The position numbers and the translations under genes are program-made. The notes under the pieces are model-generated. The model saw only the letters and a list, made by a program, of their open reading frames with translations. It was not told the origin of the DNA and ran no database searches. A stretch of DNA of 64,000 nucleotides from Iphione sp. A-MEVVRFRX5 (lineage: Eukaryota): contig OZ320315.1 in the NCBI GenBank assembly GCA_976226885.1, positions 59,892,001-59,956,000 of the forward strand, read 5' to 3'. Each line of letters starts with the position of its first letter. Position 1 is the stretch's first letter. Below, piece after piece: positions 31,036-37,512 of the stretch.

Positions 31036-31078
<43 letters not shown>

Positions 31079-31400
31079 GAGATCTGCACTACATTATCTC
31101 CACAGTGCATGTACAGATATATTGTGTGATGTGTGTGTGCATATGCCAATCAGAAGGAATTCTGACCAAATATGTGTAAATGGCATGTTTTTTGTGCAGA
31201 TTGAAAGAAATTGCACCCAAATCTGTGTAAATGCCATGTTTTTGGTTCCAATTGGAATGAATTCTGCCCAAATCTACGTGAATGGCATGTTTTTGTATGT
31301 TTGGAAGGAATTACGACCAAATCTGTGTAAATGCCATGTTTTTTATGCAAATGATATGGAAATTACTGAATATTTTACATCATCTAATATATGTTTCGTT
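30940..31400 (+). repeat. Copy of an interspersed repeat: head, (GA)n(GACA)n, then four ~50-bp tandem units (31154-31355)
   Basis: Units like aaggaattctgaccaaatatgtgtaaatggcatgttttttgtgcagattg; the same layout recurs at ~51620-52150. Confidence 0.65.
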
Positions 31401-32053
31401 TAGTTTTTGCGTGAGTAAAAACCAACTGTATTATACTTCTAGTGTATCCGAGCTCTGGAATACGGAAAAATTTGCAGCCCAGAGCTGTTTTAAGTCTCTG
31501 GACACAACAGACAACATGCAACATGGACCCGTATACATGGGAACAGACCTGCTAAATGCTATATGATTGTTTTTTTCCAGTACACATGTAAATGGAGTAT
31601 GGGAAAAATCATGTACACATGGGAAGCCAGCCATAGTATATTTGTGTAATGTAATCCAGTACTTTATGGTAAAAGTAACAAGAAATTGACCCTCGATTGA
31701 TAGAAGCGTATAAAGCAATTCATGAAACCAGTATGTTGCTTTAGGCTAATGTCTTACGGACACATTCTTTGATATTACATTTAGGAAGCCAGAATCATTC
31801 ATCTCACCTTATTGGTTCTTGACATATTCATTCATTATGCAAACATCAGAGATAGTGCACACCATAGTACCACTCCAACACTGAGTACTAATTAGTTCGA
31901 AGGTAGGCTTCTTTGAGTAAGCGCTGGATTTAGCTACCTGCTGAGCAGTTTAAGATTGGAAAACACCCATGAGCAGGTTTCATACTTAAATGGAAAGTGG
32001 ACATATTTAGGGCAGTCTGATTAACCCTGCTTTCTTCTTCCCTTGGCATAATC

Positions 32054-32177
32054 GTACAGCCACTGAAGGGCACTGCGGTTGCAAGGTATTGCTTTACGGT
32101 GGCGCCCCCTGGTGTGTTGGCCTGCCATAGGCGCCGGGCTGTGGAGCGCCAGTGGCAGTTGCCGTTTGAATGTTACC
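32054..32177 (+). repeat. Split direct repeat A1 (124 bp)
   Basis: Matches 36256-36379 with 2 substitutions. Confidence 0.97.
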
Positions 32178-32209
32178 GAGGGCAGACGTCTACACCTGCC
32201 TGCTGTTGT

Positions 32210-32245
32210 CCGAGGCTGACCGACTGACCGAGGCTGACCGAGTGA
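32210..32245 (+). repeat. Two 18-bp tandem units in the element's 5' leader
   Basis: ccgaggctgaccgactga / ccgaggctgaccgagtga, just upstream of the gag ATG. Confidence 0.85.
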
Positions 32246-32252
32246 CCGAACA

Positions 32253-33224
32253 ATGCCCGATACTAAAGAAGGCAATGATCAGGACCCCTCCGCTGAGGGA
32301 ATACTACAAAAACTACTGGAGAAGATCCAAGACCTGGAGAAACAATTTGACCAATTCTCCAAGGAGCCTGAACAGAAGACAAAGGAAAAATCCAAACAAT
32401 CAAATCCAACGGTTGTTACAAGATCGGCAGCCGCTAAGGCGTCTACTTCCCGCCAAGACGCCCAACCGTCACCGACAACAGTTGAAGGACGGGACACAAC
32501 TAAGGAACCGTCTCCAACACCAGGCGATAACATCCCGGCACCAACAGCCATCAAAGCACAAGAAGCTGGGAGGATTCAAGAAATATTCTCGACAATGTAC
32601 CCCAAAGCCCTGGAAGCCGTCGGTAAGCAACTGGCCAAGCCAAGCCCTTCTAATTACCTTATCCTAAAGGATTCAACCAGCACTGACGTCCGTAAAGCAA
32701 CTTTTCCACAATATGTAGCTGCCACCATGTCGTTGCTCCTCGATCCCACTATTGAATATCCAGCTGAGTATAACTTACTGCTGGACCACGTCAGAGACGC
32801 GGCGGAGGAGACTCAATCTACAGGATGGGACTCAATCAAGGACTGGGTCCATGAGCTGTGGGTCACTACCACAAATGACAGACTTAAGTGGGATGACCAC
32901 CAGAGGATACAGACCCTGAAGCAGAGGTCCATATCAGCATACAACAGCAACAACCGACCCAAGTACACTCCCCCATCCAAGGACAATATGGTTCCCTGCC
33001 CTAAATGGAACTATTCAAAGTGCTCAGAACAATCCCCACATATTATTAACGATGTGTATTTCTATCACATATGCCCATACTGTTTTCTCTTATTTAATAA
33101 GCAGATGGATCACAAGGTGGATCAGTGCAGGACGAGACGCCGTACACAACCACAGCCGCAGACAGGAGGGAGACAGACACCACAACAAGAATACCGACGA
33201 CCGAGGCAGGACCCCGAGTGGTGA
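32253..33224 (+). CDS. Gag-like ORF1 (323 aa), N-terminal coiled coil and C-terminal Cys/His zinc-binding cluster
   Basis: ATG with A at -3; EGILQKLLEKIQDLEKQFDQF heptad pattern; CPKWNYSKC..H-I-CPYC..H..DQC; first ORF after repeat A1. Confidence 0.88.
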   Translation: MPDTKEGNDQDPSAEGILQKLLEKIQDLEKQFDQFSKEPEQKTKEKSKQSNPTVVTRSAAAKASTSRQDAQPSPTTVEGRDTTKEPSPTPGDNIPAPTAIKAQEAGRIQEIFSTMYPKALEAVGKQLAKPSPSNYLILKDSTSTDVRKATFPQYVAATMSLLLDPTIEYPAEYNLLLDHVRDAAEETQSTGWDSIKDWVHELWVTTTNDRLKWDDHQRIQTLKQRSISAYNSNNRPKYTPPSKDNMVPCPKWNYSKCSEQSPHIINDVYFYHICPYCFLLFNKQMDHKVDQCRTRRRTQPQPQTGGRQTPQQEYRRPRQDPEW

Positions 33225-34570
33225 ACACCAACACACAGACCTCGAAAGACCATGCACGAGTTGTTTGCACACACCCATTATGTTACGATTATCTCGATTG
33301 TCATGTTTGTATGTTTGAACAATGTAATCCCCTCTACAATGCCCCCAGAGGTGTCGTATGGCGTAATCACCTTAATCTCCTTGCTGACCGTATTATGAAT
33401 TGGCCGACACCTACTGAATGTTTCCCTGAGTATTTGGCTACCACGTATACTAGGGTAAGAGAAACGGGTCTCCCAAACCACCTGGAAGCAATGATTCCTC
33501 TTCACTCACCCCTAAATATCCCACAGTGGCAGCAGCTCCTCGATCTTCACGACCCAGCCCAGTTCATTATCCTCCAATTTATTACATACGGTTTCCCTTT
33601 AGGATTCACCGGCAGTACCATCCCGGTCTCGGATACTCATATGTACTCACTCATGGATTCTGAGCAGAAGCATGTAGATAAGTATATATGTACTGAAATG
33701 GGTTTCAGAGCCATAGCAGGTCCATTCAACTCCGACCCATTCTACCCCCACTCCTGTGTTAGTCCCATAATGACTCGCCCAAAAAAGATGTCTCCTGATA
33801 GGAGGATAATAGTGGATTTGTGTCGTAGTGGGGTGAACACGTACATTCCCCACCACAATTATTTCACAGTTCCCGCACGTGTACAGCTGCCAACCACATG
33901 TAACCTCTCAGACTACATAATGTCGTCAAACCAAACCCTTTACATTTCCTCACTAGACTTAAAAAGAGCCTATAGGCACTTTCCTGTCGACCCTTTAGAC
34001 TGGCCGCTATTAACATTTATTTCAAATGACAAGTACTTCACTGACTTATCACTCCCGTTTGGCACCAGGTTTTCATCACTCCTGCTTCAATCCATATCAG
34101 AAACAATATTAGCCAAAATAACGACTAGATTTGCACATGTGCAAGCATATGCTTACTTAGATGACTATATCTTCCTACACCACGACCACGAGTATTTGTC
34201 ACAAGTACATAATTATGCCAAGGTATTAATGTCATCACTTGGTCTGCAACTGGCCCACGATAAATGTGTACCCCCTACCACTGATATCACATGGCTGGGG
34301 GTCAGATTCCAAACTGATGAAAGAAAGATGTCCATACCTGTTGAGAAAATCTCTCAGCTGACGAGCACAGCAAAGGATGTTATGAGTAAGCGCACATTAA
34401 ATATCAAGACTTTGCAATCTCTACTTGGCCTTATTAATTTTGTAGGTAAATGCTCCCCCCCGGTCAGGATTTTCATTAATACACTCCTTGATCAATACAG
34501 GCATGCCGTCTTCGCCAAGCAAAATTATGTGCAATTGTCCCAGCAGTCTATGCTTGATCTGGTTTACTGA
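33101..34570 (+). CDS. Pol ORF2, reverse transcriptase part
   Basis: Frame open from 33101 after TAA TAA; motifs SPIMTRPKK..RRIIVDL, LDLKRAYRHFPV, LPFG, YLDDY, WLG, LQSLLGLINF. First in-frame ATG only at 33311. Confidence 0.93.
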   Translation, partial: ADGSQGGSVQDETPYTTTAADRRETDTTTRIPTTEAGPRVVNTNTQTSKDHARVVCTHPLCYDYLDCHVCMFEQCNPLYNAPRGVVWRNHLNLLADRIMNWPTPTECFPEYLATTYTRVRETGLPNHLEAMIPLHSPLNIPQWQQLLDLHDPAQFIILQFITYGFPLGFTGSTIPVSDTHMYSLMDSEQKHVDKYICTEMGFRAIAGPFNSDPFYPHSCVSPIMTRPKKMSPDRRIIVDLCRSGVNTYIPHHNYFTVPARVQLPTTCNLSDYIMSSNQTLYISSLDLKRAYRHFPVDPLDWPLLTFISNDKYFTDLSLPFGTRFSSLLLQSISETILAKITTRFAHVQAYAYLDDYIFLHHDHEYLSQVHNYAKVLMSSLGLQLAHDKCVPPTTDITWLGVRFQTDERKMSIPVEKISQLTSTAKDVMSKRTLNIKTLQSLLGLINFVGKCSPPVRIFINTLLDQYRHAVFAKQNYVQLSQQSMLDLVY

Positions 34571-35090
34571 TTTTCTACCAAATTATAATGGAGTCACTCT
34601 GATTCCTCCCCCTGCCACGGTTGACGAGATCTATTGTGATGCTTCATTTACAGGCTTAGGGGCGTACTCCAGTACCATGTATTACTCTGTCACCGTACCG
34701 CTAGAATTGTCTGCCTACCCGATATCACAGCTAGAAGCCTTTAACACAGCCCTGGCGATATACACACTACTAACTGATAGCCATGCGAATATGAGAGTAG
34801 AGGTTTTTTGTGATAACTCCGCCACAGTCTCAGTCTTGTCAACAGGGAAGACTCGTGATCCCTTCCTTTCAAAAATTGCAAGGGCAGTTTGGATGAGGGC
34901 AGCAAACAATTGTACTCATCTACTATTTACTCACAAGCCTGGTTCAGATATGATATACGCTGACGCCTTGTCCAGGCTCACTGTGTCGAGCAAGTACAAG
35001 GCTATCCACTCAAGATTCATTAGGCAGAATCCCACAATTGAAAGGGTATACCCCACTAAGGCAATAGCCTCACGTATATCATCATTTTAA
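34560..35090 (+). CDS. Pol ORF2, RNase H part, separated from RT by a frameshift at ~34559
   Basis: WFTDFLPNYNG..IYCDASFTGLGAY..ISQLEAFN..FCDNSATV..ADALSR; catalytic D-E-D-D present. Confidence 0.9.
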   Translation, partial: WFTDFLPNYNGVTLIPPPATVDEIYCDASFTGLGAYSSTMYYSVTVPLELSAYPISQLEAFNTALAIYTLLTDSHANMRVEVFCDNSATVSVLSTGKTRDPFLSKIARAVWMRAANNCTHLLFTHKPGSDMIYADALSRLTVSSKYKAIHSRFIRQNPTIERVYPTKAIASRISSF

Positions 35091-35097
35091 TTTACAG

Positions 35098-36068
35098 GTC
35101 CCCCTCTGACCGACTTGGCACACCGGGCTATCCTCAGACAGGCCCAGTCCGTCACCCCCGCGACACACACTCGTCGTATCCAGCAGTCCGAGCTAGGCAT
35201 AGCCTTTTGCCTACACTTCGAGTTTCCTATAGAGTCTCTACAGGATTATCAGGTCCTCCTGTATATAGAATATTTAGCATCTTTGGACTATACTCCTGAA
35301 GTCGTCGCCCAATATGTTTCATCACTTAAGTACGTTCTCCAGCAGAAGGACTATTCCCTAGAAGCGATTAACTCCCATAGAGCCACTACTGCCCTTAAGG
35401 CCCTGAGGCTCACATCTCGTCATGTCCCAGCACAGAAGCACCCTATCACAGTCCAGATTCTATCTCAGTTAGTTAGCTACCTAGTTCCCCTAGGCTCTCT
35501 TGGCATTACACTCAATGCCCTCTATATATTCCTTTTCTTCAGTCTCGTCCGTCAGAGCAATGTTGCCCCAAGGGTTCCCCAGAGATTCAATCCACGCACT
35601 CAGCTGACTAGGTCGGACATCCTAATTGGTAGAGACTCAGTCACAGTAACAATTAAATGGTCCAAGACAATTTCGGTATCCTCTCCGGAGGTGATTACTC
35701 TCCCTGCCCTTGATTCACCCCTATGTCCGAGAAGGGCCCTACTAACGATGCTACAGATATCACCAACTCGTTCCCCATCACAGCCCTTGTTTGTGGATCC
35801 AGTTTACCATCAAGCGTTCCCAGTGAATAAGCTCGCCTTGATTTTGAGAAAATCATTAGCCAGCCTGGGGTACACTCCTAATGACTTCTCTCTGCACAGC
35901 TTCAGAAGGGGCGGTGCCCAGGCCCTGCAGGCCATGGGGGCATCTGACTCTCAGATTTTAGCACAGGGGACATGGAAGACTTTGCCAGGTTCGGCTCAGT
36001 ACACCAGTCGTAGAATAGCATCTGCTCAAGCCGCCACGCTTATGTCCAAGCACCCCGACTTGACGTAA
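35098..36068 (+). CDS. Tyrosine recombinase ORF3, no ATG upstream of the catalytic domain
   Basis: Catalytic residues: R (LVRQSN), K (KWSKT), HxxR (HSFRRGG), W (GTW), Y (AQY). Track start is TTG; the first Met lies after the catalytic R and K. Confidence 0.95.
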
Positions 36069-36082
36069 TACCCCTATGGGTT

Positions 36083-36255
36083 TGGTGTTACCTTCAAGAA
36101 ATTGCATGTATGTTGCCTATGTTGTGCGCATTTATTCAATTTATCTGTGAATCAGTCTCAAAAGACTAAAGGATTGTGTCTATTGAATAAATATGATGTT
36201 CCTCCATGCTCTGTATTATTATTTGTGTTGAGGGGGCGCCAAGGCTAGGGCAATA
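36083..36255 (+). repeat. Split direct repeat B1 (173 bp), contains AATAAA at 36186-36191
   Basis: Matches 36690-36862 with 1 substitution. Confidence 0.97.
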
Positions 36256-36379
36256 GTACAGCCACTGAAGGGCACTGCGGTTGCAAGGTATTGCTTTACG
36301 GTGGCGCCCCCTGGTGTGTTGGCCTGCCATAGGCGCGGGGCTGTGGAGCGCCAGTGGCAGTTGCCGTTTGCATGTTACC
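36256..36379 (+). repeat. Split direct repeat A2, directly abutting B1
   Basis: Matches A1 at 122/124. Confidence 0.97.
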
Positions 36380-36543
36380 CACCCATCCCACCTCGGTCGT
36401 GGATGATATGTACCTCGATTGTCGAATTTTGTATGGTAGGAGGTAGGGCTATTAGCCTTCGGTTGTCTCACGAAATCTGGAATGAATGGTATGGCTCAGT
36501 CTCAAGAGACTAATTGATGTGATTGCTGATTGATGAGGTTTAC

Positions 36544-36689
36544 GGTGTTACCTTCAACAAATTGCATGTATGTTGCCTATGTTATGTGCATTTATTCAAT
36601 TTATCTGTGAATCAGTCTCAAGAGACTAAAAGATTGTGTCTATTGAACTATTGTCTATTGTCTATTGTCTATTGTCTATTGAACAAATA
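36544..36689 (+). repeat. Extra partial B copy (B') with a (CTATTGT)n expansion at 36648-36682
   Basis: First ~104 bp of B with a few substitutions, then 4-5 heptamer units. Confidence 0.93.
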
Positions 36690-36862
36690 TGGTGTTACCT
36701 TCAAGAAATTGCATGTATGTTGCCTATGTTGTGCGCATTTATTCAATTTATCTGTGAATCAGTCTCAAGAGACTAAAGGATTGTGTCTATTGAATAAATA
36801 TGATGTTCCTCCATGCTCTGTATTATTATTTGTGTTGAGGGGGCGCCAAGGCTAGGGCAATA
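36690..36862 (+). repeat. Split direct repeat B2 (3' end of the element)
   Basis: Matches B1 at 172/173; similarity stops after caata. Confidence 0.97.
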
Positions 36863-37512
36863 CTAAGAGAAACAGCTGATGAGTTTGGGATATATTTTGG
36901 ACAATCGACCTTTGTTGTAATGTTCACATCTTTACCTCTCAGGGACAGAGCTGGCCTGCCCAGTTTTTCTGTTTAATCAAGTACTGTTCATTTGACAGCT
37001 GTCTTGAATTCAATCTGCAGTACTCTCTTCCTTTATTTAATGATCCAGACATAAAGTTCAGGCCATAATGGAACAGTGGACTAATGAATGCCTTTAAGTC
37101 CTTTACCCTTTCATGGAATCGGAGTTATGAAACTACATCGGCAATTGAATATCTCGTCAATCTTACATGTGTTCCTATAGTTTGCATCACAGGTATCCAT
37201 GTCAGTCGCCACTGATATTTTCCAATAACTTTTGTGTTGTAACTTTGTTTTCACGCCACTCAGAAATTAAGTTCAAAAGTGTGACTTTTATATAATCCCA
37301 CACAATTATACGGTCTTACTCTCATCTATTTTGAGACGATTTTCAAGAGTCTATGTGTAGATATCTCTGACCTAGATATAAATGCACTATGTGACATGTG
37401 TGCATTATTGCTGTGGCATCTAGCAGACGTTTTGGTAAGTTATCGACTATTATGACAAATATATATATATATTTTTTCTTGTGCCACCAGAGTCATCCAT
37501 GCGTCTGTATAC

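Follow-up and report, generated by a model that had tools for sequence, protein, structure and literature searches.

Organization of the element

The 64,000-nt stretch of the Iphione sp. A-MEVVRFRX5 genome analyzed here (assembly GCA_976226885.1, contig OZ320315.1, positions 59,892,001 to 59,956,000 of the forward strand; hereafter the window) carries a 4.8 kb Ngaro-type tyrosine-recombinase element at about 32050–36865. The element encodes a Gag protein, a Pol protein comprising reverse transcriptase (RT) and ribonuclease H (RH) regions, and a tyrosine recombinase (YR). Comparison of its copies and relatives suggests that the three proteins are probably expressed from one transcript by alternative splicing, in which a single donor within gag would be joined to either of two downstream acceptors. 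Characters by which Ngaro elements are recognized were found: split direct repeats in the order A1 – open reading frames (ORFs) – B1 A2 B2, a reverse transcriptase domain, and a tyrosine recombinase in place of a DDE integrase. In the ORF list, gag is followed by a reverse-transcriptase ORF at 33101–34570, which lies in a different frame from gag, and by the recombinase ORF at 35091–36068. The window copy has the following features.

32050..32177, + strand: A1 split direct repeat (5′ terminal repeat), 128 nt, 98% identical to A2
32253..33224, + strand: gag ORF, 323 amino acids (aa), from the ORF list; 25 homologous gag ORFs in the genome, 57–98% aa identity
32253..32622, + strand: exon 1, the shared 123-codon leader plus 1 nt, 370 nt, phase 1
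32622..32627, + strand: predicted splice donor G/GTAAG (gag codons GGT AAG), invariant in 21/21 non-redundant copies
32623..33104, + strand: predicted intron 1, spanning the core of gag and the larger part of the Cys/His cluster, 482 nt
33081..33104, + strand: predicted acceptor 1, a T-rich tract plus (A/G)CAG, with CAG invariant in 21/21 copies
33105..34570, + strand: predicted Pol exon as read here, a linker overlapping the gag 3′ end and then reverse transcriptase (RVT_1), cut short by a frameshift
34555..34565, + strand: site of a 5-nt deletion in the window copy only, from alignment with copies L002, L003 and L004 and from tblastn frames
34446..35090, + strand: RH-homologous region (tblastn), out of frame with RT here, ending in TAA
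35074..35097, + strand: predicted acceptor 2, the T-rich RH end, the RH stop codon and then TTTACAG; TTNCAG in 19/19 copies
35098..36068, + strand: predicted YR exon, encoding an entire tyrosine recombinase but no start codon, matched to Cre by the family profile
36083..36258, + strand: B1 split direct repeat, 176 nt, 99% identical to B2
36252..36379, + strand: A2 split direct repeat, 98% identical to A1
36690..36865, + strand: B2 split direct repeat (3′ end of the element), 99% identical to B1

The reverse transcriptase was identified by Pfam RVT_1 (E=2e-15, 57.5 bits against a cut-off of 29.6). The RH region gave no Pfam match even at E=5; all copies of the family conserve it, and it can be aligned with the corresponding region of scallop and ENA elements. 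The single YR sequence searched against Pfam and PDB likewise gave no match, whereas a profile built from YR and 25 database homologues matched Cre recombinase at 3.8e-12. His266, Arg269, Trp292 and Tyr300 of YR are conserved at the H-x-x-R, Trp and Tyr positions, and several of the YR homologues carry PF00589. The alignment with Cre begins about ten residues into the YR exon, indicating that this exon encodes a whole recombinase that merely lacks a start codon. No methyltransferase domain was detected: an intact 664-aa pol gives RVT_1 alone, and the gap between RH and YR holds no further ORF. The repeats are direct, unlike those of DIRS1-like elements, although no search was aimed at inverted repeats.

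Predicted splice sites of the window copy

The initial annotation had placed a strong donor within gag and two phase-matched acceptors ahead of the RT and YR frames, and this geometry was recovered from the window copy. Exon 1 ends at 32622 after 370 nt, that is, in phase 1, and is followed by GTAAGC. At acceptor 1, a T-rich tract precedes AAGCAG ending at 33104, and the last stop codon of the pol frame (33098–33100) lies 4 nt before the exon start at 33105. Acceptor 2 (..TTTAATTTACAG) ends at 35097, and the last stop codon of the YR frame (35088–35090) lies 7 nt before the exon start at 35098. The introns are 482 and 2475 nt long, as claimed. Virtual splicing of the two junctions is in frame, giving ..EAV-D-GSQGG.. 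and ..EAV-G-PPLTDL.., with a leader-YR product of 446 aa. The observations that had motivated the proposal also held: YR has no usable ATG, with no Met ahead of its catalytic half, and no slippery heptamer of the form XXXYYYZ occurs in the gag/pol overlap.

Two statements of that annotation required qualification. The first junction had been described as leading into RT and RH, which is correct for RT and for intact relatives but not for RH in the window copy. Compared with three other copies (97%, 84% and 78% identical), the window copy has a 5-nt deletion near 34559/34560 that shifts the RH frame; its leader-Pol ends after RT at 611 aa, compared with 786 aa in the 97%-identical copy L002. 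The second concerns the phase match. Both acceptors are in phase 1, but they do not represent two independent coincidences, because RT, RH and YR share one frame in intact copies of the window subfamily, in which a single conserved stop codon separates RH from YR. In addition, acceptor 1 of the window copy is a tandem AAG-CAG, in which both AGs are in phase.

Conservation of the predicted donor beyond coding constraint

The donor GT, both acceptor AGs and their phases, whose conservation the initial annotation had treated as a touchstone of its proposal, are kept across the family copies. The family sample was drawn from the same genome, in which a DNA search returned 74 matches; the 25 gag ORFs listed above and 20 full-length copies were used. 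Synonymous variation was examined by aligning the codons of 21 non-redundant gag copies, which share 57–72% aa identity with the window copy. In this alignment, 129 gag columns with a conserved amino acid and degenerate codons were tested, and the mean synonymous diversity was 0.39–0.62. Only five of the 129 columns show zero synonymous diversity, namely Ser87, Gly124 (GGT), Lys125 (AAG), Gln284 (CAG) and His287. Three of these five coincide with the predicted sites: Gly124 and Lys125 form the donor G/GTAAG, and Gln284 provides the AG of acceptor 1. The hypergeometric probability of these three columns, which had been specified in advance, all belonging to the invariant five is about 3e-5. For comparison, invariant codons make up 2 of 241 non-overlap pol columns and 3 of 150 YR columns.

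Every synonymous variant is seen in the codons immediately 5′ of the donor (Pro, Lys, Ala, Leu, Glu, Thr and Val). A genome-wide pattern that left the six donor bases free retrieved 79 copies, 77 of which carry GGTAAG, while all four bases occur at the adjacent 4-fold sites. No other GTRAG keeps its position along the element, and exon 1 ends in phase 1 in all 22 copies examined.

The other two invariant gag codons, Ser87 (TCT, window 32511–32513) and His287 (CAC, 33111–33113), are synonymously invariant in the 21 diverged copies for no obvious reason. The latter occupies nt 7–9 of the Pol exon and could belong to an exonic splicing signal. As a separate observation, three copies with an identical donor region are located close together on contig C19 (69814118–69814913 and 69930421), two of them 763 nt apart, and this cluster may reflect a tandem or nested arrangement of elements.

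Predicted acceptor 1 and the expression of Pol

Intron 1 is exactly 482 nt long in 22 of 22 copies, and the pol frame opens 4–7 nt 5′ of acceptor 1 in 21 of them. The CAG of acceptor 1 is invariant in all 21 aligned copies, while other Gln codons vary. The 20 nt preceding its AG contain 51% T, compared with 20% for gag, even though the encoded residues differ among the copies; the tract of acceptor 2 likewise contains about 51% T. Virtual splicing of the intact copies yields leader-Pol ORFs of 786–879 aa.

The openness of the pol frame locates the point at which it is entered. In the overlap, the gag frame is the one conserved as protein, and the openness expected of the pol frame was estimated by recoding the gag codons synonymously with the codon usage of the family itself. 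The pol frame is open over the whole overlap in 21 of 21 copies, against an expectation of 8% per copy. When the overlap is divided, the first half is open in 21/21 copies (19% expected) and the second half in 21/21 (44% expected), while in a stretch of equal length just 5′ of acceptor 1 the pol frame is open in 0/21. The frame is thus held open from acceptor 1 and closed just upstream, which indicates that reading in the pol frame begins at acceptor 1. The −1 frame of the gag codons preceding acceptor 1 is a stop codon. As judged from these sequences, entry at acceptor 1 fits a splice junction and not slippage.

Other routes to Pol were considered. With regard to upstream ATGs or a frameshift signal in intact copies, which the initial annotation had named as evidence that would speak against splicing, no Met is conserved in the pol-frame overlap across the copies, and no XXXYYYZ heptamer is present in the overlap in 22 copies. 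The gag stop codon differs among copies (TGA, TAA or TAG), so that no recoding context is conserved. A −1 frameshift producing Gag-Pol was rejected on the basis of the missing slippery site and the variable stop codon and context. From these comparisons, a splice from the donor to the Pol acceptor appears fairly probable.

Within pol, the adjacent codons for Asn-Leu (AAT CTC, window 33374–33379, in the motif H-L-N-L-L-A) are synonymously invariant in 14 intact copies. This pair may be a cis-acting element.

Predicted acceptor 2 and the expression of the recombinase

In all 19 copies compared, the RH stop codon is followed by TTNCAG, whose AG lies in phase 1 relative to YR without exception. 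The join from the gag donor to YR is in frame in every one of these copies, with the junction consensus V-(G/D/E)-(P/T/H)-x-L-x-x-L-A, and 11 of the 19 retain intact leader-YR ORFs of 445–457 aa. The constancy of this phase stands beside a variable relationship between RH and YR: the frame offset between them is 0 in the window subfamily, whereas the main family has an offset of 2 and copy L045 an offset of 1. The offset of 0 in the window subfamily results from one extra base between the stop codon and the AG. The RH stop codon within that subfamily is TAA in three copies and TGA in one. Fusion of RH to YR by readthrough or frameshifting was therefore rejected, as the offset differs between subfamilies and the RH stop codon is TAA or TGA. 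Near-cognate start codons ahead of YR were also discarded as a candidate, since the CTG and ATT found in the main family are absent from the window subfamily. On this comparative evidence, splicing from the donor to the YR acceptor is highly probable.

At the opposite end of the YR exon, three of the last 13 codons are synonymously invariant, within about 36020–36068 of the window and just 5′ of B1 (36083). This observation suggests a cis-acting signal that overlaps the end of the ORF.

Related elements in other species

A database search with YR retrieved three scallop RefSeq proteins of 462–475 aa, from Pecten maximus, Argopecten irradians and Mizuhopecten yessoensis. The two loci examined, LOC117318630 of P. 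maximus and LOC110460989 of M. yessoensis, are two-exon genes located inside repeated elements. In both, exon 1 corresponds to the first 133–148 codons of a 396–402-aa gag ORF, with a stretch resembling a coiled coil; RT/RH homologues lie in the intron of about 2.7 kb, and exon 2 encodes YR. Their donors are G/GTGAGA and G/GTATGC, both in phase 1, and their acceptors, ..GATTTGCAG/AT and ..CCTTCCAG/AC, both create an Asp junction codon, so that the junctions read Asp-Pro-x-Leu or Asp-Thr-Ala-Trp. These gene models thus share the leader-to-YR design of the window element at about 31% YR identity. In contrast, the scallop pol lies in the gag frame after a single TGA, and a frame-shifting Pol acceptor is not needed there. 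Several phase-1 AGs follow this stop codon (L052:7189–7191 and L051:3541–3543), and either readthrough or a second acceptor is possible for scallop Pol.

Strong phase-1 acceptors at the start of YR (..ATTACAG/, ..GATTTCAG/ and ..TTCTTTCAG/) also occur in three Ngaro-like elements that are still more distantly related, taken from ENA and Logan assemblies. The searches with the other two proteins were less informative. No gag homologue was found in the protein database at E<=0.001, and pol homologues, which are 31–37% identical, were found on ENA or Logan contigs alone. The N-terminal extensions of these pol homologues are of low complexity and revealed no leader fusion; one 3.9-kb Logan contig among the matches (L058) contains no gag ORF.

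Proposed mechanism and alternative explanations

The initial annotation had interpreted the sites as giving Gag from unspliced RNA, and leader-Pol and leader-YR from two spliced RNAs. Every comparative test made favors this interpretation, and we propose, with a probability of roughly 0.62, that a single transcript of the element, alternatively spliced with one donor and two acceptors, gives rise to all three proteins. The unspliced RNA would encode Gag and presumably serve as the template for reverse transcription. The donor inside gag (G/GTAAG, after codon 123, phase 1) could be joined to either acceptor. Joining to acceptor 1, 482 nt downstream in the 3′ part of gag, would shift translation into the pol frame and yield leader-RT/RH, whereas joining to acceptor 2, 6–7 nt after the RH stop codon, would yield leader-YR. 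Pol and YR would accordingly depend on the start codon of Gag and begin with its first 123 residues, which include a predicted long helix. The sequences establish the presence of the sites in matching phases, a conservation that exceeds what coding requires, a pol frame kept open beginning at acceptor 1 and the absence of any recoding signal. From these features we infer that the spliceosome uses the sites, in some balance among the three RNAs.

The structure prediction is of low confidence. An AlphaFold2 (AF2) model of Gag has a low mean confidence (predicted local distance difference test score, pLDDT, of 52) and outlines an N-terminal helix (residues 14–36), a disordered basic stretch, a helical core and a C-terminal Cys/His cluster; a helix at residues 102–127 is cut by the donor. 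Prediction of a leader homodimer gave a score of 0.01, which is no evidence either way. Purely as speculation, the shared leader might target the enzymes to Gag assemblies.

Several points weigh against the proposed scheme. The window copy itself cannot encode RH in frame. Each of the three sites falls within coding sequence or next to it, and since the 22 copies are related by descent, a count such as 21/21 does not represent that many independent events. A search among about 80 genomic copies for processed ones lacking the intron found none, a result that is neutral to weakly negative. The pattern used covered the end of exon 1 followed by A, which corresponds to the Pol junction and the main-family YR junction, with the window-subfamily YR junction (GT, like the intron) falling outside it; its one match proved to be an unspliced copy with a point mutation. 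A branch point was not identified, and one located close to the AG would lie unusually near it. A Pol acceptor is not common to all these elements, the scallop pol being in the gag frame after one stop codon, and the scallop gene models are automatic annotations, not a described mechanism.

Among the other explanations, the one that survives best keeps the donor-to-YR splice and dispenses with the Pol splice. Pol would then arise in another way, for instance through non-canonical frameshifting or through termination and reinitiation close to where the overlap begins, and the CAG at 33102–33104 would have a different cause, such as an exonic signal or overlapping-frame constraint. The leader-YR splice has outside support from the scallop models and the distant elements, while the Pol acceptor is supported in the family of this genome only, and the in-frame scallop pol indicates that Pol expression varies among Ngaro lineages. 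Acceptor 1 also lies inside the highly conserved gag peptide NKQMDHK, so that the constraints acting on it are entangled. However, this explanation has to accommodate the lack of any heptamer in 22 copies or conserved Met, and a −1 codon at acceptor 1 that is a stop and excludes simple slippage. It also conflicts with a pol frame whose first half is open in every copy and which is closed just upstream, placing the entry at acceptor 1, and with a CAG that is synonymously invariant where other Gln codons vary. We regard it as unlikely.

A second explanation treats GGTAAG and the AG contexts as cis-acting RNA or DNA signals for packaging, priming or recombination, with the enzymes made by other translational routes. 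The replication signals of Ngaro elements are not yet defined, and other short invariant stretches do exist, namely the AAT CTC pair in pol and the three codons at the YR 3′ end beside B1. The invariant bases, however, are the U1-complementary donor positions −1 to +5 and the AGs that follow T-rich tracts. Moreover, phase 1 is common to the donor and the two acceptors, whose joining produces long open fusions, the acceptors lie 4–7 nt from the frame openings, and the scallop gene models use the homologous sites as splice sites, leaving this explanation decidedly improbable. Finally, the copies are related and GT and AG dinucleotides are frequent, but coincidental splice-consensus matches inherited from a recent common ancestor are scarcely credible, given that the flanking synonymous sites are saturated (diversity 0.39–0.62), that the copies are therefore old enough to lose unconstrained bases, that the coincidence of sites and invariant columns has p of about 3e-5, and that the same architecture recurs in elements with only about 30% YR identity. 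The retention of GGTAAG in 77 of 79 copies and the openness of the pol frame in the overlap likewise contradict this explanation.

Returning to the alternative splicing of one transcript from a donor in gag, a wider claim can be formulated, to which we give slightly less than even odds. A gag-internal donor with phase-matched acceptors may be a general and ancient programme of a large metazoan Ngaro clade, the YR acceptor being present in the window family, in scallops and in the more distant elements. The enzymes would be produced as fusions to a Gag-derived leader and thereby brought into Gag assemblies; such a programme would be retrovirus-like, independently evolved, and would replace Gag-Pol frameshifting.

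Relation to known systems

The window element resembles the Ngaro group (order DIRS) in its repeat order, in its succession of gag-like ORF, RT/RH and YR, and in having no methyltransferase; in that group, too, the ORFs overlap or are frameshifted and lack starts of their own (PMC3783388, PMC9210276). The YR ORF of Ngaro elements has been described as lying in the same frame as RT-RH or as frameshifted (Muszewska et al. 2013, PMC3783388), and overlap of the ORFs has also been noted (Gazolla et al. 2021, PMC9210276). None of the published Ngaro descriptions consulted proposes a splicing route, whereas the family of the window element displays splice signals under selection. A full-text literature search found no description of DIRS or Ngaro elements producing Pol or YR through natural splicing, although an earlier mention in the founding Ngaro paper or in the 2005 and 2015 reviews is possible. 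The use of one donor with alternative acceptors is known from retroviruses and some long terminal repeat (LTR) elements; for tyrosine-recombinase retrotransposons it is not described in the literature searched.

Retroviruses use a single major 5′ donor with several acceptors, and the env mRNA of avian leukosis virus shares the first Gag codons. The Pol protein of foamy viruses is translated from a spliced mRNA. The scheme proposed here would be similar in that a single transcript acts both as the genome and as the gag mRNA and is also the precursor of the spliced mRNAs. In both cases the donor is located at or close to the 5′ end of gag, alternative acceptors give access to the downstream genes, and the products can carry a short Gag N-terminus. 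Apart from RT/RH, however, the window element is unrelated to retroviruses and has no LTRs, protease or DDE integrase. Furthermore, both enzymes, rather than the envelope, would be reached by splicing, the leader is long (123 aa), and Gag-Pol frameshifting would be replaced altogether. Drosophila copia and plant BARE-type LTR retrotransposons use splicing to adjust the stoichiometry of Gag and Pol, and they likewise rely on host splicing for separate mRNAs encoding structural and enzymatic proteins. Their splicing removes pol to give a gag-only mRNA, whereas that of the window element would remove the gag core, or gag and pol, to give the enzymes.

How DIRS and Ngaro elements express overlapping, frameshifted and start-less ORFs has been left open in the literature, and the window family offers a concrete, testable answer with exact junctions. 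If the scheme is correct, annotation of transposable elements should model Ngaro proteins as spliced fusions, as YR and Pol would otherwise be called start-less fragments. It would also explain the "uncharacterized" two-exon coiled-coil-recombinase gene predictions of molluscs, and would provide an independent case of a retroelement that relies on splicing by the host to control how much structural protein is made relative to enzymes.

Additional observations

A third, diverged B-like repeat is present at 36543–36718, between A2 and B2 (partial, 68% identical to B1), and the 3′ repeat block is thus longer than the canonical B1-A2-B2. On the other side of the element, a (GA)n/(GACA)n microsatellite lies just 5′ of it (window 31040–31350), followed by about four tandem units of approximately 60 nt, each of which bears the motif aaatctgtgtaaatgccatgtttt.

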